64,000 nucleotides of DNA, from positions 1 to 64,000 of the IMG/VR virus record IMGVR_UViG_3300042473_001540; one strand, written 5' to 3'. The notes under the pieces were generated by a model. It was not told the origin of the DNA. It did no database searches and saw nothing but the letters and a program-made list of their open reading frames with translations. A program made the translations under genes and the position numbers. Of the stretch, positions 2,263-54,847 are shown piece after piece (positions within the stretch are counted from its first letter, which is position 1; each line of letters begins with the position of its first letter).

Positions 2263-3390
2263 ATGATGCAAACTAATGAAGCCCAAGATTGGGAACAGAT
2301 AAAAGATCCAGCAAAAAGATGGCTTGGAAGATTCACATATATGAATCAAGGAAAGAATCCCGAAAAGCACGTATTAGATACTCTCATCAAGAAATATCCC
2401 AACAAAGCTGGAGTCATATATCGAGGAATGAATTTCACTCGGGAAGAATCCTATACAGAGTTCATGGAACTGTTCAACAAGTCAAATGGCAAGTTAACGT
2501 TCAATGTGGTCACAAGCTGGAGTGGTGATCCCAGCACTGCTAACCAATTTGCATTGACTCAACCCACTTATCAATTGAATCCTGCTGTGTTAGCCGCTCA
2601 TGACCAACAAATGAAACGTCGAGAAAGGCTTAGTGGTTACAGAGGAGTAATTTTGAAAACCACTGTCTCTGCTGGAGTGGGCATTGATGTTGACGCCACT
2701 GGGGTTGGACATGAGAGTGAAATTGTGTTACCTCCTGGCACTTATCAAACAGAGATTTACCAAGAAGTAAAACAATACAAACACAGTCTTGAGGATGGCG
2801 ACACCTCAGTTGATGATGTGATTTTGAAAACAACAGCAGAGAGCTTACGCAGCCGATCTACAGAGCACAGCTTCTTTGACTATGTGATACATCATCATGG
2901 CCAGGAATTGAGTCCAAAAGCACAGCAGCATTTGTTGAAATTGTTTGGTCCTCAAACTGGTATACCTTTGTTCAAGAGTTCTGTTGATCAGCATACAAAT
3001 TACTTTACCAAAAAACCTGAGGTGACGTTTGACTATCACATACCAAACATACGGCTGTTTGAGTTGGCAGAAAAAGGAATTTTCACTCCTGAAGTAACAA
3101 ATAAGATCAGATTGTTGGGTAAAAAAATCATTAGTCAAGCACTGCCTGTAATAGAGAGTGTTATAGTTGATGCCACTTATTTCAACCCAGCACAGTTGGG
3201 TCTGGTGAGTAGGATTAGTCAGGACAACCGAGTGATTGATGCTATAAGAAAAGCCATTAAGCCAGCAGTAGCCCAATTGAATCAAAAAGTTCAGGACATC
3301 AACAAAATACAAGATCCAAAAGAGAAAAGGCAGGCCATTGAGCATTACAAGGATGAGATGGTGCGCCTGTTAAGCAGATTGGGCATATAG
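2263..3390 (+). CDS. Putative ADP-ribosyltransferase (R-S-E type) domain protein
   Basis: IYRG...TSWS...HESEIVL motifs; TAAATA upstream. Confidence 0.55.
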   Translation: MMQTNEAQDWEQIKDPAKRWLGRFTYMNQGKNPEKHVLDTLIKKYPNKAGVIYRGMNFTREESYTEFMELFNKSNGKLTFNVVTSWSGDPSTANQFALTQPTYQLNPAVLAAHDQQMKRRERLSGYRGVILKTTVSAGVGIDVDATGVGHESEIVLPPGTYQTEIYQEVKQYKHSLEDGDTSVDDVILKTTAESLRSRSTEHSFFDYVIHHHGQELSPKAQQHLLKLFGPQTGIPLFKSSVDQHTNYFTKKPEVTFDYHIPNIRLFELAEKGIFTPEVTNKIRLLGKKIISQALPVIESVIVDATYFNPAQLGLVSRISQDNRVIDAIRKAIKPAVAQLNQKVQDINKIQDPKEKRQAIEHYKDEMVRLLSRLGI

Positions 3391-10536: not shown

Positions 10537-11125
10537 TAAATTTGAGCAGCTGATCCAAAACAACACCACTCTCTTGACGGAGATACCAACAGAGGATTTT
10601 GGTTGGACCAATAACCGATGGTATAGCCAACAGTTTCGGCTTGCTCATGTGGAAAGATTTCAGCAACCAAAATTCAGTGTGTTGCACACTGTGATCTTTC
10701 CTCACCTGACTGATCCCAGCCCTATTTTTGGGTTTGATATCATTGCCAGTGACACCAAGGCCACAGGTTTGTTTTTTGATTTCAGTCCCACTGTTGAAAG
10801 TTATGGAATCATATCTAGTCATCTATGGAGTGAGCCACGTGAAAGACCTGAATGGGGAACAATTTTCAGCGAGCATTGGATCGCTTGCAGACCCACATAT
10901 ACGGAAGCTGAAACCATCAGCACATTGGCATGCACACTGTTGGAACAATATCTATCTCAGTTGGGAACAAAAACCACAACAGATGTACCTATGGTCATAA
11001 AGAAGCAAAATCAATACAGTTTGAACCAAAGACAAAACACTCATACTACTAGAGTTCTCATGAAGATACTGGGAGAAGAGCGTGGCCAGTATTTTGTGGA
11101 AAATATTTTATTCCCAACCATATGA
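10499..11125 (+). CDS. Ferredoxin-dependent bilin reductase (PcyA/PcyX-like)
   Basis: VLHTVIFP, PIFGFDII, FDFSP, RERPEWGTIFS, QRQNTHT; overlaps heme oxygenase. Confidence 0.85.
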   Translation: MTNFINLINQTADKFEQLIQNNTTLLTEIPTEDFGWTNNRWYSQQFRLAHVERFQQPKFSVLHTVIFPHLTDPSPIFGFDIIASDTKATGLFFDFSPTVESYGIISSHLWSEPRERPEWGTIFSEHWIACRPTYTEAETISTLACTLLEQYLSQLGTKTTTDVPMVIKKQNQYSLNQRQNTHTTRVLMKILGEERGQYFVENILFPTI

Positions 11126-12838: not shown

Positions 12839-13513
12839 ATGATTCAATACATTGAAATACGCCAAGCTGAGGGCGGAGAAGACAGTCAACTGTTTGTTGA
12901 TGATTTGGCACGTGCCTATATTCGCATGGCCAGCAAGCTGGGTTGACTCACTACTGTAGTTAAAACGGTCCCAGGCTTCTGTGTTATCAAACTAGAGGGA
13001 CAAGATCTTTCACAGTGGGCACAAGAAGCAGGTGGGCATAGGATACAGAGGGTTCCACCAACTGAAAGACGTGGAAGAGTCCATACCAGTACAGTCACAG
13101 TAGCAGTGCTAGAGTATCCTTCAGAACAAGCCATTGAAATACTTGACAAAGATCTAGTAATAGAGTGGTTTTCTGGCACTGGTCCCGGTGGTCAAAATCG
13201 AAATAAGGTAATGGCCAGTTGTAGATTGCGACACACACCAACTGGGGTAGTCGTTACCGCCCAAACAAGAAGCAGAACCACTAGCTTTGCACAAGCTAGG
13301 CAGGAATTGGAGACACGACTTCAAAACAGGTTCAAGAGCCAAGCAGCCTCTCAAACCAGCCAAGAAAGAAAACATCAGGTTGGTAGCGGCCAGCGCGGAG
13401 ATAAAATACGCACTATCCAAATTCAACATGACTCAGCTGTGGACCATCGCACAGGCAAACGTTGCACTGCGGAAAGTTATCTCAAAGGCGAAATTTACAA
13501 GCTTTGGTTGTGA
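12839..13513 (+). CDS. RF1-like class I peptide release factor lacking domain 1, with in-frame TGA at 12944-12946
   Basis: IEIRQAEGGEDSQLF...KLG*...EAGGHRIQRVPPTERRGRVHTSTVTVAV, GPGGQNRNK, GSGQRGDKIRT all in one frame. Confidence 0.85.
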
Positions 13514-25024: not shown

Positions 25025-25133
25025 TTGCCATCGAGGTTGGAACAGCCTCCCAACACACCATGAGAATGGTAACTAGCCGGCAGCAATCACCTAGCTGGTG
25101 AAGAAATCCGGAAGTGGCATCCGGCGATGGCGA
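25025..25133 (+). ncRNA. Candidate multibranch RNA
   Basis: TTGCCATCG/CGATGGCGA closing stem with four internal hairpins. Confidence 0.45.
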
Positions 25134-25152: not shown

Positions 25153-25205
25153 GGGCCTGTAGCTCAACTGAATAGAGCGTGAGACTTTGGATCTCAAGGT
25201 TGAGA
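25153..25205 (+). pseudogene. Truncated tRNA (Arg-like body, TTG anticodon)
   Basis: Intact 5' acceptor strand, D and anticodon arms; no T arm or matching 3' acceptor strand. Confidence 0.55.
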
Positions 25206-25328
25206 TGGTTTACTCCTGTCATACCTGGGGAAATTGTACGCAGATCCTACGGATCAATGTCAGGTTGACTCCACACCCTCTTAAAGCCATGTAAATAAAT
25301 GCAGACAATAAGACAGGAGCAGGGTTAT

Positions 25329-29059: not shown

Positions 29060-29222
29060 GCCGGATTAGCTCATTTGGTAGAGCAATTGATTTTTCCGTG
29101 GCGGGATAATGCCACCAACTGGTGAATAAATTTACCAGTTGTTTGTGGGCAACACTGGCCTAAAGCCAGTACGCCAAATGGTAATCAATAGGTGGTCAGT
29201 TCGAAACTGACATCCGGCACCA
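29060..29222 (+). tRNA. tRNA-Thr (TGT or GGT) with 87-nt anticodon-loop insertion
   Basis: Perfect 5' and 3' tRNA halves (ATTGA/TCAAT stem, TTCGAAA, ACCA) separated by a structured insert. Confidence 0.8.
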
Positions 29223-31398: not shown

Positions 31399-31472
31399 CG
31401 TCCTGTAGCTCAACTGAATAGAGCATTTGAATCCTAGTCAAAAGGTTGCGAGTTTGAATCTCGCCAGGACGT
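31399..31472 (+). tRNA. tRNA-Arg(CCT)
   Basis: TTTGA-ATCCTAG-TCAAA; Arg-type D loop. Confidence 0.75.
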
Positions 31473-32316: not shown

Positions 32317-32922
32317 TTACCATCTTGCATTATCCTCAAATCCAGCATCTTCTAGTTCTTTTTGACAATCAAACATGGCACGTTTGCCTTGTCCTGCGTA
32401 TTTGTTCAAGATTGTTTCAACAGTCGTGTGATTCATTGCTGACCGCAACGAGATACTTTTGGCTGCCAAACAACGGAGCAGTGGAAGAGTAGGCGTGTAA
32501 GGTATAGCCAAGTAATTGAGCTCTGAAGGCATACCTTGGAGTGAGGTTAATGGGTTGAGGTGACAACTAAAAAGATCACCAACACTGCTGGGAGCACCTT
32601 CCAGTGAAGTCAGTTGGTTGTTGAAGCATACGAAACTTCCAACCACATTCTTGGGTGCAGCTTTAAGTGAAATAAGTTGGTTACTTGAGCCTAAGAAACT
32701 TCCACCAACACTCTCTGGCGCCCCGTCCAGTGTGGTTAGTTGGTTGTAATCGCACTGGAAGTGTCCAAGAACACTCTTGAAACGCACAGGGAACTGGGGT
32801 AATTGTCTTTTAAGTATAACATTACCCTGGCAAGTGATCAACCCCTCAGGATCTATTGTGACTTGGCCTGTTGTTTTGAAATTAGCTTTCAACAAAGCCA
32901 TTACTTCTTTTTTGTCTACCAT
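32317..32922 (-). CDS. LRR-like cassette protein 9
   Basis: LRR-like repeats plus conserved C-terminal block. Confidence 0.85.
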   Translation of the reverse strand: MVDKKEVMALLKANFKTTGQVTIDPEGLITCQGNVILKRQLPQFPVRFKSVLGHFQCDYNQLTTLDGAPESVGGSFLGSSNQLISLKAAPKNVVGSFVCFNNQLTSLEGAPSSVGDLFSCHLNPLTSLQGMPSELNYLAIPYTPTLPLLRCLAAKSISLRSAMNHTTVETILNKYAGQGKRAMFDCQKELEDAGFEDNARW

Positions 32923-33668
32923 CTTGCATTCCCTTCAAATCCAGCATCTTCCAGTTCTTTTTGGCAGTCAAACATGGCACGTTTGCCTTGACCCATATAC
33001 TTTTGCAGAATAGCCCGCACCTCGTGTGGCCATCCCATACCCGACCACAGTTTTTTAGCATTTAAACAACGCAAGAGCGGCAGAGTGGGGCTGTAGTCAA
33101 TCCATAAAACCCTTACTTCAGTAGGCATTCCTTCAAGTGACTCTAGCTGATTACCCCATGCTCTCAACTCGCCAGTGATGGTTTTTGGTGCACCGTGTAG
33201 TGAGACTAGTTTGTTTTCCATGCAAAACAAATCATGCACTTTCTCAGGAACATGTTCCAGTGATGAGAGTTGATTTGTCATACAAGAGAAATTGGCACCA
33301 ACTGATTTGGGACAGTGTTCAAGGCTTTCTATGTTGTTATTATCGCATTTGAAATCTCCGCCCACATGTTGAGGCGAACCCAACAAACTGGTGAGTTGGT
33401 TGTGGCCACACTTGAAATCTCTACCTACCCAAGAGGGTGCGCCTTCTAGACTCACCAGATCGGTATGCTGTACAGCAAAATCGTAGCGTATTTTTCCAAA
33501 CCTTACCCGCAAGGTTTTTATACCTGGCTTACCATCAAGGTAAGATTTCTCCTTGCTCTTGACACTGCCTGTGCAGGATATCAATCCTGTGTTGGGATCA
33601 ACAGAGAGTTTACCTGTGTGAGAGTAATATTTGTCAAAAGTTTTTTTGATCCCGGCTAGATCTACCAT
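32916..33668 (-). CDS. LRR-like cassette protein 8
   Basis: Same; 7-nt ATGGTAG start/stop overlap. Confidence 0.85.
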   Translation of the reverse strand: MVDLAGIKKTFDKYYSHTGKLSVDPNTGLISCTGSVKSKEKSYLDGKPGIKTLRVRFGKIRYDFAVQHTDLVSLEGAPSWVGRDFKCGHNQLTSLLGSPQHVGGDFKCDNNNIESLEHCPKSVGANFSCMTNQLSSLEHVPEKVHDLFCMENKLVSLHGAPKTITGELRAWGNQLESLEGMPTEVRVLWIDYSPTLPLLRCLNAKKLWSGMGWPHEVRAILQKYMGQGKRAMFDCQKELEDAGFEGNARW

Positions 33669-34279
33669 CGTGCATTTCCTTCAAATCCAGAGTCTTCCAA
33701 ATCTTTTTGGCAGTCAAACATGGCAGCTTTGCCTTGACCTGCATATTTGTTCATGATTTCTTGAACCTTCTGGGGTGGCTCCGATTCATCAACCCTATGC
33801 ATGAATACAATTTTTTTGGCAACCAATGCACGTAGCAAAGGCAAAGTGGGCGAATATTGTAACACTAGTCGCCCTAAACCTTCTTGCGGTATGCCTTCAA
33901 GACTTTCAAGTGGATTGCCCACACAACTCAAAGATCCAAGAACTTTTTTGGGTGCACCTTGCAAGCTCTTGAGCTGGTTGAACCCACATAAGTAGTGTTC
34001 GCCAACAGCATCAGGACCGCCTTCAAGAGTTTGTAAATTGTTCTCAGTACAACGAAATTCATTGTAGACATATTTGGGAGATCCTTGAAGGCTTGTGAGC
34101 CCCATGCCCCCCACATCAAATCCTTCCACTTCATAAAAGCCAACTGGCAACTTCTTAACATGCAACATAAGCGTTACGTAACCTTTTGTGCTTATTGTTC
34201 CATCAGAATTGATTACAATGCTTTCATTACATTGAAAATAATCATCAAAAGTTTTTTTGATGTTATCAACGTCTACCAT
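33662..34279 (-). CDS. LRR-like cassette protein 7
   Basis: Same. Confidence 0.85.
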   Translation of the reverse strand: MVDVDNIKKTFDDYFQCNESIVINSDGTISTKGYVTLMLHVKKLPVGFYEVEGFDVGGMGLTSLQGSPKYVYNEFRCTENNLQTLEGGPDAVGEHYLCGFNQLKSLQGAPKKVLGSLSCVGNPLESLEGIPQEGLGRLVLQYSPTLPLLRALVAKKIVFMHRVDESEPPQKVQEIMNKYAGQGKAAMFDCQKDLEDSGFEGNARW

Positions 34280-34911
34280 TTTGCATGATCCTCAAATCCA
34301 GCGTCTTCCAAATCTTTTTGGCAATCAAACATGGCACGTTTGCCTTGGCCAGCATATTTGTTCAAAATTGTCTGCACTTTTCCCTTCTCCACAGTGTGAG
34401 TGTCGTCAGCAGGCTCTAAAAATATATGCCTTGCTGCCAAGGTACGTAAGAGAGGCAAATGTGGTAGATACGGTAACCAAGCTGCATTTTCCACTTTCAA
34501 CGGAAATCCATCCAAGCTTTTCAACGGATTACCAATGCAATTGAAATTATTGGGTATCTGGACAGGTGCCCCCTTCAAATCAACAAGTTGATTATGGTCA
34601 CAGTAGTAGTTCCAACCTACAATTTCTGGCCCCCCACTAAGGCTTTTGAGCATGTTACGTGAACAGTCAAAACTCACGCCCACTTCAGGGGGACAGCCTT
34701 CCAAGGTTACTAGTGCGTTCTCATCTAACGATAGATTTTCAGTTACAGCTTTGAAGGCAACTGGCAGTTTTTCAAAACGTGTATAGTGGAGATTCAACAA
34801 TTGAATATCGCCATTTACTGTTACCAGTCCATCTGATGAAACTTTTGCACTGTTGTAGTCAAAGCTGAAATGGTCTTTCAATAACTGCAAGATTTCTCGT
34901 TTGTTTACCAT
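34273..34911 (-). CDS. LRR-like cassette protein 6
   Basis: Same. Confidence 0.85.
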   Translation of the reverse strand: MVNKREILQLLKDHFSFDYNSAKVSSDGLVTVNGDIQLLNLHYTRFEKLPVAFKAVTENLSLDENALVTLEGCPPEVGVSFDCSRNMLKSLSGGPEIVGWNYYCDHNQLVDLKGAPVQIPNNFNCIGNPLKSLDGFPLKVENAAWLPYLPHLPLLRTLAARHIFLEPADDTHTVEKGKVQTILNKYAGQGKRAMFDCQKDLEDAGFEDHAKW

Positions 34912-35564
34912 CTGGCGTTGTCCTCAAATCCGGCATCTTCCAATTCTTTTTGACAATCAAACATAACACGTTTTCCTTGCCCCAAATATTTTTCCAAAAT
35001 GTATAACACCTTCCAGGCATCGCTGCCCTCGCTTTGATACGGCCAAAAAATAATCTCTGGTGCCACCAATGTGCGCAACAAAGGCAGCTGAGTATCATAA
35101 GTGATATACAAACTATCTCCAATTTTTTGAGGAAAGCCCTGCAAGCTCTCTAGAGGATTGGCTGAACAATTGAACACACTGGGGATTTCTCTAGGTGCCC
35201 CTTCCAAATCCTTCAATTGATTTTTACTGCAATTATAACTGCCGCCAAATGTGGGTGTTTGTGTCGTGCCTATTGTTTTGGGTCCAAACTTCAAACTTTT
35301 GAGTTCATTATTGTCACACTCAAAATTCTTACCAACAGTTTCTGGACAACCCTCTAGTGTCTTGAGTTGGTTGATGCTGAGCATCATACTGCCTTCAATG
35401 TGAGAAAATTTCACCGGTAGTTCTTGAAAAGAACTGTGAAATTTGTTGTATAACACAACGTCTCCCATGACACTGACTTTGCCAGCTGGATCAACAATGG
35501 GGTCCCCATCTACCATGAAATGTTGAGTTAGCGTGTTCAACACATGCTGTTTGACGTCTACCAT
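34905..35564 (-). CDS. LRR-like cassette protein 5
   Basis: Same. Confidence 0.85.
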   Translation of the reverse strand: MVDVKQHVLNTLTQHFMVDGDPIVDPAGKVSVMGDVVLYNKFHSSFQELPVKFSHIEGSMMLSINQLKTLEGCPETVGKNFECDNNELKSLKFGPKTIGTTQTPTFGGSYNCSKNQLKDLEGAPREIPSVFNCSANPLESLQGFPQKIGDSLYITYDTQLPLLRTLVAPEIIFWPYQSEGSDAWKVLYILEKYLGQGKRVMFDCQKELEDAGFEDNARW

Positions 35565-36163
35565 CTTGCATTTCCTTCAAAGCCCGCATCTTCCAGTTCT
35601 TTTTGGCAATCAAACAGGGCACGTTTGCCTTGTCCTGCGTATTTGTAAAATATTCCTTCAATTGTTAGAAGTTTGCTTTGCATAACATTGTGGGCATACA
35701 GCATTAGGCCCTGTTGGCAGTTCAAAGCTCGAAGCAAGGGCAATTTATTGTGATAATTTATGCTCAAGTGTTGGCCTACTCGTTGGGGAAACCCAGCAAG
35801 ACTCAACACTGGAACCTCTTGTCTAAATCCCACACGACCTGAAACCTCAAGGGGCCCACCTGTCATGTCTTTCAAAGGATTTTTGTTGGCAGTGAATCTG
35901 CCTCCCACAATCTGCGGACAACCTTCAAGACTGGAGAGTCCACATCTGTCTAAAATCAAACTGGCATGGCAAACGCCAAATTTTACAGGCAGTTTTCCAT
36001 TGGGAAACGGTCCTTGTATGGCCAAGAGCACACCATATCCTGGTGTGATCTCCTGCACATTTACTATACCACTATCTTCAATTTGAAAGCGCACCCGGTT
36101 GTCTGCCTCACCATTACGAAAATAAGTGTTCAACATGTGCTGAACTTCTTGTTTGTCTACCAT
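35558..36163 (-). CDS. LRR-like cassette protein 4
   Basis: Same. Confidence 0.85.
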   Translation of the reverse strand: MVDKQEVQHMLNTYFRNGEADNRVRFQIEDSGIVNVQEITPGYGVLLAIQGPFPNGKLPVKFGVCHASLILDRCGLSSLEGCPQIVGGRFTANKNPLKDMTGGPLEVSGRVGFRQEVPVLSLAGFPQRVGQHLSINYHNKLPLLRALNCQQGLMLYAHNVMQSKLLTIEGIFYKYAGQGKRALFDCQKELEDAGFEGNARW

Positions 36164-36756
36164 CTTGCATTTCCTTCAAATCCAGCATCCTCTAGATCTT
36201 TTTGACATTCAAACAGGGCACGCTTGCCCTGTCCTTTGTATTTTTCAATTATTTCTTCAATGGGATTAGTGTTAAAGGATGATGAGCTCAATATTACACC
36301 ATCTTGGCAAGCTAACGTGCGCAGCAGCGGCAACTTGTCATGGTAAGGCAGTTTAGCATAGTCACCCACCCTATCAGGAAAACCATCCAAACTCTCTAAT
36401 AGGTTTTTCTGCATCCCAAGCCAAAACCTACCTGTGACTTCTTTGGGCCCACCCTTGAAATTTTTCAATTGATTGCCAAGTGCAACAAAATTGCCTTGGA
36501 TTACAGGGGGACAACCAACCAAGTCCACGATTTGATTCCGGTCCAATTTTAAGCTGGCTTTGAACAAGCCAAATCTCACAGGCAACTGACCTCCAGGGAA
36601 GGGTTTGTCCTTAATAGTGCGGAGATGGCCGCGACCAGGAGTCAGCTCAAGCACATTAACCAAGCCCTCAGGACCTATGTCAAATTTCACAGCGTCATTT
36701 GGCTCAAAGAAAAAATACTCTGCCAACAGTTCCAAAATTTCCCTTTTGTCTACCAT
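36157..36756 (-). CDS. LRR-like cassette protein 3
   Basis: Same. Confidence 0.85.
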   Translation of the reverse strand: MVDKREILELLAEYFFFEPNDAVKFDIGPEGLVNVLELTPGRGHLRTIKDKPFPGGQLPVRFGLFKASLKLDRNQIVDLVGCPPVIQGNFVALGNQLKNFKGGPKEVTGRFWLGMQKNLLESLDGFPDRVGDYAKLPYHDKLPLLRTLACQDGVILSSSSFNTNPIEEIIEKYKGQGKRALFECQKDLEDAGFEGNARW

Positions 36757-37571
36757 TTGGCGTTCCTTTCAAATCCTGCGTCTTCCAATTCTTTTTGACA
36801 GTCAAACAGGGCTCGTTTGCCCTGGCCTGCGTATTTTTTCAAGATGGTTTCCACTTGAATATACTTGCCCCACAGCACAGGCCAAAAATTGACCTTCTGG
36901 GCTACCAAAAGCCGTAACAAGGGCAAATCGGATTTGTAACTGACTTCAATCAAATCAGGAGTTTGGGAGCCTAACCCCTCAAGATTTTCCAAGGGATTGT
37001 GATCAAAAATAAACTGCTTGGAAATATTCAAAGAGGCACCTTTGAGTGTTGTGAGCTTGTTGTTGGTTGCCCAAAAATATTCCACGGTCTGTGGTGCGTC
37101 TTGAAGATCAGTCAAGAGATTTTTACTGACATCAAACATACCACCTATTTGCAGGGGAGCACCTCGCAAACTCACTAAATTGTTGTTGTATGCAATGTAT
37201 TCTTGTGTAAAGTCTCGTGGACTTCCCAACAAATCTGAGAGTTTATTATTCTGGCAAGAATATTGTCCTTTTACTGTTTTTGGGCCACCAACCAAGCTGA
37301 TCAACTGGTTTTCACTGCAATCAAATGTGTCCAAGACAGTGTGAGGACAGCCTTCAAGTGTTTCCAACTTGTTCCTGTGACAGAGAAAATTGCCTTCCAC
37401 CACTCCAAATCTCACAGGCAATCGAGAGGTCTCTTTGCTCAACAAAATTGATCCATGAGCATCTACAACACCTGTATCATGTATAGTGAAAAGGGTACTT
37501 TCCCAACCAAAGTATTCATTCAGTAACTGACGAACAGTTGTTTTGTCTTGTGGGAATTCCTGGTTTACCAT
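36750..37571 (-). CDS. LRR-like cassette protein 2
   Basis: Same; longest member. Confidence 0.85.
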   Translation of the reverse strand: MVNQEFPQDKTTVRQLLNEYFGWESTLFTIHDTGVVDAHGSILLSKETSRLPVRFGVVEGNFLCHRNKLETLEGCPHTVLDTFDCSENQLISLVGGPKTVKGQYSCQNNKLSDLLGSPRDFTQEYIAYNNNLVSLRGAPLQIGGMFDVSKNLLTDLQDAPQTVEYFWATNNKLTTLKGASLNISKQFIFDHNPLENLEGLGSQTPDLIEVSYKSDLPLLRLLVAQKVNFWPVLWGKYIQVETILKKYAGQGKRALFDCQKELEDAGFERNAKW

Positions 37572-38221
37572 CGTGCATTTTCCTCAAAACCCGCATCTTC
37601 CAATTCTTTTTGGCAGTCAAACAAAGCACGTTTGCCTTTGCCTGCATAACTGTTCAAAATTTTATGTAACTGCTGGAATTTTCCTTCGTTTCCTCGCTTA
37701 TATTGCATAGGCACAATAAGGTCCACATGCAAGGCTCCTAATGTTCTCAACAGTGGTATTGTGGGACTATACGTCAATGTTACCCAAGCAATGCTCTTGG
37801 GCAAGTGGTCAAGTGACTCCAGTGGGTTGTCTTGAATCTCCAGATTGTCAGATACTGTGTCCGGCAAACCTTGTAGAGAAGTCAACTTGTTGCTATTGAG
37901 AAGGATACTGCCACTGACCCAATGCGGAAAACTGGTTAACTTTGATAGCAAGTTGAAGCTGGCGTCGAAATCTCCTTCAATCTCAAATGGGCATCCTTCC
38001 AAGGTTCTTAGATTCTTGTTGTTGCAGGTGAAGGTACCATGCACCTTACTGAAACGCAAAGGTAACTGAGATTGAGGCCGCGTTAGGTGTAAGTCACCAG
38101 CCACAACAATCTTACCATCTTGATCAAACATCCAACCAGCTGGATATAAGGCATTGCTCTCTATCTTGAAGTTCTGGCTCAAGATGGTTTTGGTTTGTTC
38201 ATATTCCACATCACTTACCAT
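37565..38221 (-). CDS. LRR-like cassette protein 1
   Basis: Same. Confidence 0.85.
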   Translation of the reverse strand: MVSDVEYEQTKTILSQNFKIESNALYPAGWMFDQDGKIVVAGDLHLTRPQSQLPLRFSKVHGTFTCNNKNLRTLEGCPFEIEGDFDASFNLLSKLTSFPHWVSGSILLNSNKLTSLQGLPDTVSDNLEIQDNPLESLDHLPKSIAWVTLTYSPTIPLLRTLGALHVDLIVPMQYKRGNEGKFQQLHKILNSYAGKGKRALFDCQKELEDAGFEENARW

Positions 38222-39010: not shown

Positions 39011-39084
39011 GGCCCTGTATCCCAATTGGCAGAGGAGACAGACTTAAAATCTGTTAGTTGAGGGTTCGAATCCCTCTGGGGCCA
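39011..39084 (+). tRNA. tRNA-Leu(TAA), short variable loop
   Basis: ACAGA-CTTAAAA-TCTGT; TTCGAAT. Confidence 0.85.
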
Positions 39085-39183: not shown

Positions 39184-39873
39184 ATGACATACCTAGATAT
39201 ACAACAACATCACAAGCCAAATCATAAACATCCTTTCAAGAATCTGCTGTTCACCTGGTTCAATGAAGTCTACTCCCGGGAGCTCACAGCTAAGGAATAT
39301 TATCTCCAAATCCCAGGCATGAGTGGAAAAAAGTATCGCTATCTCATGAACAAAATTTCCAGCAGCTTGGAGGAAGCTCGCTACTTGGAAATAGGCAGTT
39401 GGAAAGGCAGCACACTTTGCAGCGTGTTGAGCAACAATAGGGTGCAAGCCACAGCCATTGACAATTGGAGTCAGTTTGATGGCCCCAGGGATGAATTTTT
39501 TGCCAATGTAGACAAGACAATCCAGCTGGGAACCCAACTCACAGTGTTGGAAAAGGATTTTCGTTCAATTGACTATAGCACTCTAGGCAAGTTCAACATG
39601 TATTTGTTTGATGGTCCACACACTGCACAAGATCAATATGATGGCTTGATGATGGCCCAACCCGCTCTAGATCCTGATTATCTTCTTGTGGTAGATGATT
39701 GGAACTGGCCGCCTGCTAGAGAAGGAACACATCGAGCCTTGAGAGAATTGGGGGCTGAGGTCAGCTATATCACAATTATGACCACACCAGATGGCAGTCA
39801 TCCCAACAATCATAGTGAAAACAGTGATTGGCACAATGGGTATTTTCTTGCTGCGGTTTCCAAGAAAGCTTGA
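39184..39873 (+). CDS. Class I SAM-dependent methyltransferase
   Basis: YLEIGSWKGST, FDGPH, VVDDWNW. Confidence 0.8.
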   Translation: MTYLDIQQHHKPNHKHPFKNLLFTWFNEVYSRELTAKEYYLQIPGMSGKKYRYLMNKISSSLEEARYLEIGSWKGSTLCSVLSNNRVQATAIDNWSQFDGPRDEFFANVDKTIQLGTQLTVLEKDFRSIDYSTLGKFNMYLFDGPHTAQDQYDGLMMAQPALDPDYLLVVDDWNWPPAREGTHRALRELGAEVSYITIMTTPDGSHPNNHSENSDWHNGYFLAAVSKKA

Positions 39874-39908
39874 CAGTGTTGATATGATAGTGTAATATAG
39901 ATGTGTAA

Positions 39909-39994
39909 GCGGCGTTAGCTCAGGGGTTAGAGCACAAGTCTTCCAAACTTGAGGCGAATAGGTTCCATCGGTTCGAATCCGATACGCCGCTCCA
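39909..39994 (+). tRNA. tRNA-Gly(TCC), enlarged variable region
   Basis: CAAGT-CTTCCAA-ACTTG; U73; CCA. Confidence 0.85.
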
Positions 39995-40124
39995 TTTAAA
40001 CTTACTAACAGTTTTTGAGACGCATACTATCGTGTTTGTTTTTGATTGTGTTAAACTTAAAATTACTACAAACATTCGTAGTTGACGTTGCAGAAAAGAT
40101 CAATATAGTAAAACTACAAGTTAA

Positions 40125-40248
40125 GGATCCGTGGTCTAATTGGATAAGGCAAGAGCCTTCCGGTCCCGCAGGTAGCATTCAAGGTTCGAATCCTTGGGGA
40201 CCGCTCCTAAGCTCTTCGATGGGGGTTCGAATCCCTCCGGGTCCGCCA
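40125..40248 (+). tRNA. tRNA-Arg (probably TCT) with 47-nt tRNA-mimic insertion in anticodon
   Basis: GGATCCG/CGGGTCC-GCCA; AGAGC/GCTCT stem; two TTCGAAT T arms. Confidence 0.8.
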
Positions 40249-40280
40249 CTTACTACACTCTTATAAAAGAACCCAACCTA

Positions 40281-41072
40281 ATGCAACCACTCACCCCCGA
40301 TCAAACCCAACGCATAAAAGAATTATGGCATCAAGCCGAAGGAATTGTGATCTTGGCTGGTGCCGGCATGAGTGTAGACAGTGGCTTGCCAGATTTTCGA
40401 GGCGCCACAGGCTTGTGGACCGAGGCCAAAGAAAACTTTCTCAAGAAAGCTACAGCCAAAAGTTTTGACACCAATCCCCTTGAGGCTTGGAACTTTTACG
40501 TTGGCCGCATGATTAAATATCAAGACACTGTCCCACATGAGGGTTACAAGATCCTCCTGGATCTCCTACAATCACACAACAAAAAAAGTTTTGTAGTAAC
40601 CAGTAATGTTGATGGCCATTTTTTGAAAGCTGGTTATGACCCACAATATCTCTATGAGATACATGGCAATCTGCGAAAAATTCAGTGCACTCAACCCTGT
40701 TGCCGAAACTTACCCTCTATGCCAAAATTTTCTTCCCTGCTCACCTCAGAACAGGAAATCCCCAAATGCCCCTACTGCAACAAGAATGCTCGACCAAATG
40801 TGCTGATGTTCAACGACCCAGGGATTGTTTGGACACAAATTGATCAAGGTCAAGAAAATTTTCGGAATTGGGCAGCATCAAAGATGGAGGTTTTGGGTAT
40901 TGAAATTGGTGCAGGAACTGGAATCCCCAGCATTAGGATCTTTGGTCAAGAACGCACCACTAACTTGATTCGCATCAATCCACATGAGTTTGAAACTTCA
41001 CGTACAAGTGATTTAGGAATCTCTGCCGGTGGGTTAGAAGGGATACGGGCCCTAGAGAGGGCTGTGGGCTAG
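40281..41072 (+). CDS. Sir2-family NAD-dependent deacylase
   Basis: GAGMSVDSGLPDFRG, TSNVDG, EIHG, CxxC pairs, RPNVLMF. Confidence 0.9.
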   Translation: MQPLTPDQTQRIKELWHQAEGIVILAGAGMSVDSGLPDFRGATGLWTEAKENFLKKATAKSFDTNPLEAWNFYVGRMIKYQDTVPHEGYKILLDLLQSHNKKSFVVTSNVDGHFLKAGYDPQYLYEIHGNLRKIQCTQPCCRNLPSMPKFSSLLTSEQEIPKCPYCNKNARPNVLMFNDPGIVWTQIDQGQENFRNWAASKMEVLGIEIGAGTGIPSIRIFGQERTTNLIRINPHEFETSRTSDLGISAGGLEGIRALERAVG

Positions 41073-44727: not shown

Positions 44728-45336
44728 GTGTTCAAGTTGCTGGCCAAGTTGCCTCGAGAACTGGGGGTAGCGTGTAGCGGTGGTGTAGACAGCATGGCGG
44801 TGCTGGATTTTTTGCGCCTCCGGCACAACGTCACTGTGTGTTTTTTTCATCATGACACCGAAACAAGTTCAAAAGCGTTGAGCTTTCTCAGCACATACTG
44901 TTATGAGAACTCCATTCCCATGCGAGTGGATTTTTTGGTTGATGCGTGCCCCAAAGGGGTTTCAATGGAAGAACATTGGCGCAACAGTCGATATGAGTTT
45001 TTGCACAGCATCGAAGGAGTTGTGGTAACAGGGCATCATCTAGATGATTGTGTGGAGACCTATCTCTTCAACTGTTTGCATGGGAAAACACACACCATTC
45101 CCATGTGGCGGAACAATGTGGTGCGACCCTTTCTCACCACACCCAAGAGTGTGTTTGAAAGTTGGTGTGTGAGACATGAGGTGCCTTGGGTTGAGGATGA
45201 GAGCAATAAAGATTTGAAGTATATGCGGAATCACATTCGTCATAAGATTGTACCGGAGGCACTCAAGGTCAATCCAGGCTTGAGGAAGGTGGTCAAGCGG
45301 CTGGTTCTTCAAAGCATGCAAACAGAAAATAGTTGA
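44728..45336 (+). CDS. tilS: tRNA(Ile)-lysidine synthetase (catalytic domain only)
   Basis: SGGVDS PP-loop, GHHLDDCVET, VRPFL, EDESN, RNHIRH. Confidence 0.9.
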   Translation: MFKLLAKLPRELGVACSGGVDSMAVLDFLRLRHNVTVCFFHHDTETSSKALSFLSTYCYENSIPMRVDFLVDACPKGVSMEEHWRNSRYEFLHSIEGVVVTGHHLDDCVETYLFNCLHGKTHTIPMWRNNVVRPFLTTPKSVFESWCVRHEVPWVEDESNKDLKYMRNHIRHKIVPEALKVNPGLRKVVKRLVLQSMQTENS

Positions 45337-45376: not shown

Positions 45377-45450
45377 GGACGCATAGCTCAATTGGTTAGA
45401 GTCGGCCGCTCATAACGGTCTTGTTCCAGGTTCGAGCCCTGGTGTGTCCA
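45377..45450 (+). tRNA. tRNA-Ile2(CAT)
   Basis: GGCCG-CTCATAA-CGGTC; adjacent to tilS. Confidence 0.8.
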
Positions 45451-47192: not shown

Positions 47193-47266
47193 GGCCCCAT
47201 AAGACAAAGGTAGTCAGCTGGACTCTAAATCCAGTGGTGTGAGTTCAAATCTCACTGGTGCCACCA
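47193..47266 (+). tRNA. Amber suppressor tRNA (CTA)
   Basis: CTGGA-CTCTAAA-TCCAG; TTCAAAT; ACCA; own TTGACG-17-TATACA promoter. Confidence 0.85.
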
Positions 47267-54355: not shown

Positions 54356-54847
54356 ATGACCAAGATAGTGTTTTTAGACTTTGACGGCGTGTTATTACCT
54401 GATCCTGATGCTAGAGAGCAAGCAGAGCAGGGACTGACTACCAATAACTATCTCTCTAAAGTTGTATTCAATCCCAGTTGTGTGAAAAATTTGAATGCCT
54501 TGCTCAAGGCAACTCATGCTGAAATAGTTCTCAGCACAAGTTGGGCTGAGGGACACAGTGTTAGTGAAGTCAGCAATTGTCTCATGCGCAATGGTATTGA
54601 TCCTTCCTGTATATTTGAATACGATGATCCCAGTGAAGGCAATTACATGACTCCTAGACAGCAAGGGTCAAATCGGGGTCAAGAAGTTTTGAACTGGATT
54701 GCTGATCATCCTGAGATTGACACTTGGGTAGCAATAGATGACAACCCAGCCATCTTGTATTTGAAAACCAATTATGTGAGAACACATCCTGATCATGGTT
54801 TTGACAAAGCCAGCTTAGCAAAAGCCTTGAGCATTTTGAACAAATAA
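54356..54847 (+). CDS. HAD phosphatase (RNA-repair-associated type)
   Basis: FLDFDGVL, VLSTSW, RGQEV..W, VAIDD. Confidence 0.75.
   Translation: MTKIVFLDFDGVLLPDPDAREQAEQGLTTNNYLSKVVFNPSCVKNLNALLKATHAEIVLSTSWAEGHSVSEVSNCLMRNGIDPSCIFEYDDPSEGNYMTPRQQGSNRGQEVLNWIADHPEIDTWVAIDDNPAILYLKTNYVRTHPDHGFDKASLAKALSILNK

Follow-up and report, generated by a model that had tools for sequence, protein, structure and literature searches.

Introns in the anticodon loop of tRNA genes are known from two systems. The protein-spliced introns of archaea and eukaryotes are short and non-catalytic, interrupt the canonical position 37/38, and have a bulge-helix-bulge (BHB) motif in which two 3-nt bulges carrying the splice sites are separated by a 4-bp helix. 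The exons are held together by the tRNA body while the EndA/Sen endonuclease cuts and the ligase RtcB or Trl1 seals, and bacteria lack this splicing endonuclease. Group I introns of bacteria and phages (in tRNA-Leu UAA, fMet, Arg CCU and Ile) are mobile, show presence/absence polymorphism, usually exceed 200 nt and possess a conserved catalytic core (P3-P9, G-binding site). Outside splicing, tRNA mimics recruit RNase P and/or RNase Z to define RNA ends, as in mitochondrial tRNA punctuation, plant mitochondrial t-elements and mascRNA at the MALAT1 3' end, but these elements lie between or at the ends of transcripts and their flanks are never rejoined. Top-half tRNA mimics with an acceptor stem, a T arm and a D-loop remnant but no anticodon arm are found in the tRNA-like domain of tmRNA and in bacterial YrlA (Y RNA) modules, which are stand-alone RNAs with other partners (SmpB/AlaRS, Ro60). 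Rejoining of two tRNA halves at a break in the anticodon loop by phage enzymes is represented by phage T4, where Pnkp heals and Rnl1 seals tRNA cleaved by PrrC. This is a repair of host-inflicted damage in an uninterrupted tRNA, and no intervening sequence is removed.

Here we report on a tRNA-Arg gene of a giant aquatic phage whose anticodon is split by a 47-nt insert with the shape of a tRNA top half. The stretch of DNA analyzed (the window) comprises the first 64,000 nucleotides of the 309,756-bp phage contig IMGVR_UViG_3300042473_001540, about a fifth of the genome. The original prediction had described a mini-tRNA nested inside the anticodon of tRNA-Arg(UCU), and this observation is confirmed. 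The Rfam tRNA model (RF00005) matches 40125-40245 (+) end to end (model positions 1-71) with 43.8 bits (gathering score 29, E 4.9e-8), and about 50 nt are treated as an insertion in the anticodon loop. ARAGORN in default mode misses the gene, while in intron mode it reports tRNA-Arg at 40125-40248 with a 47-nt intron. By direct reading the locus is composed as follows.

40082-40109 (+): sigma-70-like promoter (TTGACG, 16 nt, TATAGT) ending 15 nt upstream of the tRNA, by consensus match only
40125-40160 (+): 5' exon, tRNA positions 1-35 (acceptor 5' strand, D arm with A20, anticodon stem 5' strand 40152-40156, loop CTTC)
40161-40207 (+): 47-nt insert (mini-tRNA); a boundary shifted one nucleotide to the left, 40160-40206, gives the same product
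40161-40167 (+): acceptor-like stem, 5' strand (CGGTCCC), pairing with 40197-40203 (7 bp)
40168-40179 (+): 12-nt linker containing AGGTAG (40170-40175), whose GG plausibly stands in for D-loop G18 G19, a tertiary role that is inferred
40180-40196 (+): T arm, 5-bp stem CAAGG/CCTTG (40180-40184 with 40192-40196) and loop TTCGAAT (40185-40191)
40197-40203 (+): acceptor-like stem, 3' strand (GGGACCG)
40204-40207 (+): 4-nt single-stranded tail (CTCC)
40208-40248 (+): 3' exon, loop TAA, anticodon stem 3' strand 40211-40215, variable loop, T arm, acceptor 3' strand 40238-40244, discriminator G 40245, CCA 40246-40248

The insert alone folds in this way (−18.5 kcal/mol, z = −2.3). For the whole precursor, however, the thermodynamic minimum-energy fold is not the nested cloverleaf (−45.6 versus −41.1 kcal/mol). 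Two GGTTCGAATCC motifs, that is two canonical T-loop motifs, 30 nt apart are not expected by chance (0 in 100 shuffles). The original prediction named uniqueness to this contig and an assembly artefact as grounds for rejection, and neither applies: the sequence is identical in four independent metagenome assemblies, and homologous sequences occur in four more contigs.

To investigate the conservation of the insert we collected relatives. A syntenic contig at 72-80% nucleotide identity (L123) carries, between the same neighbors, a tRNA with completely different stems but a nearly identical 48-nt insert. A metagenome scan added the contigs L127 and L131 only, and a scan with the T arm of another insert added the more distant contig L158. 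This results in four distinct sequences of the insert type containing AGGT (window, L123, L127, L158), two in tRNA-Arg(TCT) and two in tRNA(CAT). Across these, 47 of 48 base-pair cells are standard pairs and 7 of 12 pairs change on both sides, 4 of 7 in the acceptor-like stem and 3 of 5 in the T stem. At most 1 of 500 column shuffles reaches any observed measure, and sliding the partners gives at most 3 such pairs. G2 and G3 with C70 and C71, the AGGT of the linker and the T-arm nucleotides universal in tRNAs (G53, T54, T55, C56, A58 and C61) are invariant, and the loop keeps TTCRANT in all four homologues. The length of the tail is conserved while its sequence is not (CTCC, TCCC, TTCC and AACT). 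The mini-tRNA fold is therefore an evolutionary fact and not a fold seen in one sequence only. Two further insert families share the same plan, namely one unpaired or mispaired first nucleotide, a 4-bp closing stem, a first hairpin with GG in its loop, a T-arm-like hairpin and a tail. One of them is located in tRNA(TAA) of L123, L127 and L158, the other in tRNA-Leu(CAA) of L123 and L158.

Orthologous genes without the insert exist for three of the four host tRNAs. The interrupted tRNA(TAA) of L123 corresponds to window 39011-39084 with the loop CTTAAAA, the interrupted tRNA(CAT) of L127 to window 45377-45450 with the loop CTCATAA, and the interrupted tRNA-Arg of L123 to L158 3117-3194 with the loop CTTCTAA. 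In each case removal of the stem unit plus four nucleotides restores the 7-nt anticodon loop exactly. The TAA pair fixes its insert unambiguously between positions 35 and 36, whereas the insert lies at 34/35 or 35/36 in Arg and at 33/34 or 34/35 in CAT, as a leftward shift of both boundaries by one nucleotide gives the same product in the AGGT family and cannot be excluded. In Arg the loop contributes 4 nt before and 3 nt after the insert, in CAT 3 nt before and 4 nt after. Although the 5'/3' flanks thus differ (4/7 nt in Arg, 3/8 nt in tRNA(CAT) of L127 and L158), what is removed is always N1 to N72 plus 4 nt, and the same rule holds for the TAA and CAA families. The excision points hence track the mini-tRNA, at the equivalents of tRNA positions 1 and 76, and not a fixed position of the host tRNA.

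The Arg pair settles the window gene as Arg(UCU), the register given in the original prediction, and together with A20 and G73 excludes the CCT register, which the prediction had regarded as formally possible, as well as TCC (Gly). By the E. coli identity rules for tRNA-Arg (A20, C35 and discriminator A or G), the D loop AATTGGATA carries A20, the discriminator is G at 40245, and C35 results from the TCT register. There is a need for the product: there is no other tRNA(TCT) in the window (tRNA-Arg(CCT) is at 31399), and AGA is the most used Arg codon in window ORFs (8.4 per 1000).

The interrupted genes stay good tRNAs. Among three Arg(TCT) genes 13 of 21 exon pairs change on both sides and 98.9% of cells stay paired. 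Two interrupted tRNA-Leu(TAA) orthologues (L127, L158) differ by compensatory changes in the T stem and the variable arm, while their inserts are 49/51 identical although the surrounding protein genes are only about 68% identical. All seven interrupted genes give normal tRNAs when spliced in silico, the window gene being called tRNA-Arg(tct) of 77 nt by ARAGORN. This argues for function after removal of the insert. One must keep in mind that the same insert occurs in unrelated tRNA bodies (window versus L123 Arg; L123 versus L127 TAA), so some insertions or cassette swaps may be recent, which weakens the argument that exons were maintained while interrupted.

Compared to the BHB introns the insert shares the short length, the location in the anticodon loop and, most likely, the logic of removal by an endonuclease plus a ligase. 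It has no bulge-helix-bulge, however: 4 nt (CTTC) on the 5' strand and 7 nt (CTCC TAA) on the 3' strand, or 3 and 8 nt, form an internal loop next to a 7-bp helix, no central 4-bp helix is present, the position is inside the anticodon, the host is a bacteriophage and the intron is itself tRNA-shaped. Group I introns likewise interrupt the anticodon loop of bacterial-type tRNA genes and show presence/absence polymorphism, but the inserts are 47-62 nt long and have no P3-P9 core. No Intron_gpI match was found in 39800-40400 at E up to 10 or in 20000-50000 at E up to 0.1, and the insert cannot plausibly self-splice. The tRNA-like processing signals are the nearest analogue for how the proposed mechanism would work, with the difference that here the mimic is nested inside a tRNA and the flanks must be religated. 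With the tmRNA domain and YrlA modules, which are not embedded in a tRNA, the insert shares no sequence. We found no description of tRNA-shaped or other small non-group-I introns in phage tRNA genes in the literature searched, which did not cover subscription journals, so that an earlier report cannot be excluded; this agrees with the original prediction, whose author knew of no such intron class.

The original prediction further proposed an intron that recruits host tRNA-processing enzymes as its splicing endonuclease, followed by ligation, and this interpretation is partly supported. The best explanation, in our view, is an RNA-level intron of a new type, a copy of the top half of a tRNA (acceptor stem, T arm, D-loop GG) placed inside the anticodon of a functional phage tRNA-Arg(UCU). 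The precursor would fold as a tRNA body carrying a mini-tRNA on its anticodon stem, the mini-tRNA would be cut out 5' of nucleotide 1 and 3' of the fourth nucleotide past the stem, and the two exon halves, held together by the tRNA body, would be sealed in the anticodon loop by an RNA ligase. The elements also appear to move or be exchanged between tRNA genes. The analysis itself establishes the fold, its conservation, the boundaries (with the one-nucleotide ambiguity given above) and the maintenance of the exons, whereas cleavage, ligation and every enzyme are inferred from sequence alone. We hold excision guided by tRNA mimicry with involvement of RNase P with moderate confidence only, and RNA-level splicing of any kind to be likely.

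The most concrete candidate for the 5' cut is host RNase P. The conserved module, the acceptor/T-arm stack plus the D-loop GG, is what RNase P, RNase Z and the CCA-adding enzyme read; RNase P cleaves acceptor/T-arm minihelices and leaves 3'-OH and 5'-phosphate, so that a cut 5' of position 1 would leave a 3'-OH on the 5' exon. The coaxial 7-bp acceptor-like and 5-bp T stems with a T loop are present and covary, a single-stranded 5' leader is present as well, while the 3' RCCA tail that pairs with P RNA in type A enzymes is absent, a feature dispensable for cyanobacterial RNase P. The weak point is the 3' cut. Canonical RNase Z cuts directly after position 73, whereas the boundary deduced from the empty sites is equivalent to 76/77, and a cut at 73/74 would leave three extra nucleotides and thus a 10-nt loop. 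A cut after position 76 is not known beyond the Thermotoga enzyme and RNase BN in vitro, and no standard bacterial endonuclease is known to cut at 76/77 on a tail that is not CCA. An RNase Z/BN-like activity cutting after position 76, RNase E or a phage enzyme may be considered. The proposed mechanism is thus plausible for the 5' cut but leaves the 3' cut unexplained. If the 3' cut left a 5'-phosphate, the two halves would be a direct substrate for an Rnl-type ligase, in parallel to the sealing of anticodon-loop breaks by T4 Rnl1; a phage Rnl-type or heal-and-seal system appears most likely. Related jumbo phages commonly encode Rnl1, Rnl2 or RtcB (PMC7824862). In the present phage Pfam and PHROGs searches found no RNA ligase, kinase or RtcB among about 70 window ORFs, nor was one found in 20 kb further to the right, where the structural genes are reached, a scope that leaves out about 225 kb of the genome. 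The window does encode an RNA-repair type HAD phosphatase (HAD_SAK_2, E 1.9e-27) at 54356-54847 and an RNase T-family exonuclease.

A serious, though in our judgement less probable, rival is a spliced intron cut by a dedicated, unidentified phage or host endonuclease that measures from the base of the closing helix, blunt on the 5' strand and 4-5 nt out on the 3' strand, with repair by a heal-and-seal pathway (kinase/phosphatase plus ligase) or by RtcB. RNase P would then not be involved, and the tRNA-like elbow would serve only as a folding or recognition handle. The constant ruler holds in three insert families whose closing stems are 4-7 bp long and whose arms differ. Position 1:72 is a mismatch in some members (G.A in L158 CAT; C.A or G.A in the TAA and CAA families, whose closing stems are only 4 bp), one CAA-family member lacks a canonical T loop, and inserts in another phage (L011) carry the minihelix at their 3' end with a long 5' extension that RNase P could not remove cleanly. 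The HAD_SAK_2 phosphatase would also fit. On the other hand no candidate endonuclease was identified, and the conservation of the T-loop and GG nucleotides in the AGGT family is hard to explain unless something that reads tRNA elbows is involved.

It appears unlikely that the insert is a selfish DNA-level element, for example a miniature hairpin moved by a single-strand transposase or a product of cassette recombination, and that the interrupted genes are recent pseudogenes or dispensable copies. Presence/absence polymorphism between close relatives and the same insert in unrelated tRNA bodies do indicate mobility, GenBank annotates one interrupted, 125-nt tRNA of Serratia phage BF as a pseudogene, and as all stem pairs are Watson-Crick, DNA hairpins are not excluded. 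Against this, the sites share structure and not sequence, always inside the 7-nt anticodon loop of different tRNAs (CTTC^TAA, CTC^ATAA, CTTA^AAA), strand-specific tRNA tertiary motifs are conserved, the only tRNA in the window for the commonest Arg codon would be dead, and compensatory evolution is seen in the exons of two interrupted orthologues. There is one copy in the window and none outside tRNA genes in about 0.9 Mb of loci, and no endonuclease or transposase gene lies in or beside the insert. Similarly doubtful is the idea that the mini-tRNA itself is the product, released by host tRNA-processing enzymes from a host tRNA that acts as scaffold or is sacrificed, in order to serve as a decoy or inhibitor for tRNA-targeting defence nucleases or tRNA-binding factors, or to time tRNA supply during infection. 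The very strong conservation of insert sequence (49/51 across phages whose genes are about 68% identical), the precise elbow mimicry and the interaction of phage tRNAs with anticodon-nuclease defences speak for it, but it explains neither why excision restores a perfect loop in every case nor why the exons stay intact, and it is compatible with splicing rather than opposed to it. An assembly chimera, or overlapping or tandem tRNA fragments misread as nested, is effectively refuted. Tandem tRNAs with att-type fragments and ARAGORN fusions of neighboring tRNAs do account for most of the more than 118 double-T-arm loci in viral contigs, but here, in addition to the recurrence across assemblies and contigs, the 3' strand after the inner T arm pairs within the insert and not with the tRNA 5' end, and both the inner and the outer structures covary.

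A more far-reaching reading remains tentative. The mini-tRNA introns of large phages would represent a third mechanistic class of tRNA intron beside self-splicing group I and BHB/endonuclease introns, matured at both ends by the tRNA end-processing machinery of the cell (RNase P at the 5' end, a 76/77 endonuclease at the 3' end) and sealed by a phage RNA ligase. This would give Rnl-type ligases a constitutive splicing role and offer a simple route for intron spread, as the ligase could insert a free mini-tRNA into any cleaved anticodon loop. If the inserts are spliced, viruses of bacteria have an undescribed protein-dependent tRNA splicing pathway built from tRNA mimicry rather than from a ribozyme or a bulge-helix-bulge. 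Phage RNA ligases and RNA-repair enzymes would gain a housekeeping role, a natural case of RNase P and a partner nuclease acting as a splicing endonuclease would be supplied, and a plausible mechanism for intron gain by RNA ligation would be provided. The compact, portable excision module could also be useful as an RNA-processing tool. As standard tRNA finders miss these genes or call them pseudogenes, phage tRNA repertoires and codon-supply analyses are incomplete.

Further searches concerned the distribution of the element. The 21-mer tested as a possible copy of a bacterial tRNA 3' half was not found in any GTDB representative genome. The AGGTAG pattern in viral contigs and in genomes gave only ordinary tRNAs beyond this clade, a search anchored on tRNA-Gln gave only contigs already known, and a covariance model of the insert found no further copies in the window or in 100 loci. 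Among cultured phages there was no blastn match to the inserts, and neither the PA5oct tRNA cluster nor a piece of the 635-kb phage LR745206 contains interrupted tRNAs. Serratia phage BF carries three interrupted tRNAs of a different insert family. For tRNA-Gly at 39909-39994 an alternative pairing of the extra variable-region bases with its own acceptor strand was rejected, because the extra bases are identical in phage BF while the acceptor differs. The phage itself carries NAD-salvage genes, a sigma factor, a T4-type clamp loader and collagen-like fibres as well as cyanophage-type auxiliary genes (heme oxygenase, bilin reductase, speD, SOD and ferritin), and its nearest cultured relatives are PA5oct-like, Atu_ph07 and XacN1 jumbo phages at about 47% identity in the clamp loader.

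A second interrupted tRNA gene was found in the same window, at 29060-29222 (+). It has a perfect cloverleaf (acceptor GCCGGAT/ATCCGGC, CCA encoded) and carries an 87-nt insert in the anticodon loop, which has a 5-bp closing stem and two hairpins but no T loop. If the insert is removed in silico at TTT^GTAA the product is tRNA-Thr(TGT), and ACA is by far the commonest Thr codon. Both ARAGORN in default mode and Rfam at E up to 0.1 miss this gene.

The relatives of the window phage carry up to three interrupted tRNAs each (Leu CAA, TAA, CAT, Arg TCT). They lie at 2880-3027 and 3135-3262 in the syntenic contig L123, at c7549-7687 and c150-274 in the metagenome contig L127, and at 347-484, 1386-1525 and 10602-10726 in the more distant contig L158. 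The tRNA bodies at syntenic positions are often swapped for unrelated ones between conserved flanks. By contrast, tRNA-Gln is 100% identical in the window and L123 and differs only at the discriminator in L127. In the cultured jumbo phage Serratia phage BF (KY630187 294918-296691; locus L124) three interrupted tRNAs occur at L124 8217-8333, 8663-8789 and 9866-9990, with a different insert family of 34-51 nt consisting of a GAATC/GATTC hairpin followed by TWAC-RGCA, with no T arm. One of them is annotated as tRNA-Pseudo (125 nt), and in the Tyr-like gene the insert sits at the 5' edge of the loop. An unrelated 99-kb phage contig (IMGVR_UViG_3300014047_000002, locus L011) has three tRNAs, at L011 c1453-1613, c3925-4065 and c5772-5936, whose anticodon-loop inserts of 65-92 nt end in an acceptor-like stem (7-8 bp) stacked on a canonical T arm; a further locus, L100 12546-12669, is grouped with them. 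As these inserts have a long 5' extension and little or no 3' tail, their geometry differs from that of the window family.

A variation of another kind was observed in tRNA-Gly(TCC) at 39909-39994 (+), which is 86 nt long, with an insertion of roughly 13 nt in the variable region (variable segment AGGCGAATAGGTTCC). The same segment is present, base for base, in Serratia phage BF, although the acceptor stems differ, and the same gene matches at about 84% in the Erwinia and Yersinia jumbo phages. L123 and L127, in contrast, have ordinary tRNA-Gly genes of 75 nt. Inside the tRNA region a skipping-rope RNA (RF02924) is matched at 25026-25132 (+) with 44.5 bits, above the gathering score of 36.7, and is followed by a weak tRNA-like match at 25153-25227 (27.6 bits).

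The window further contains an amber-suppressor-type tRNA (anticodon CTA) at 47193-47266 (+), and a short RF-1-domain protein (ArfB/ICT1-like, 135 aa) at 13106-13513 (+), which is preceded by a 39-aa ORF with a weak PCRF match. As TAG ends 23 of 82 crude ORFs, there is no sign of wholesale recoding. A TilS-like PP-loop protein at 44728-45336 (+) sits directly upstream of tRNA(CAT) at 45377-45450 (+), which suggests a phage-supplied tRNA-Ile2 together with its lysidine synthetase. The closest TilS homologues are in uncultured phages of 635-642 kb and in PA5oct-like phages. A stand-alone HAD_SAK_2 domain protein, an RNA-repair type phosphatase by its profile match (E 1.9e-27), lies at 54356-54847 (+) between a dCMP deaminase and speD, while its kinase and ligase partners were not found in the window.

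The same phage is binned inside two NCBI metagenome-assembled genomes, GCA_043528745.1 (contig JBFDET010001780.1, 124.5 kb; loci L160/L161) and GCA_043534135.1 (locus L163), which could be due to mis-binning or could represent a hint towards the host. On the opposite strand, at 32317-38221 (-), we observed nine tandem paralogous ORFs of about 200-270 aa with similar N-terminal parts and no Pfam match, and a related array is present in L123 and L127.
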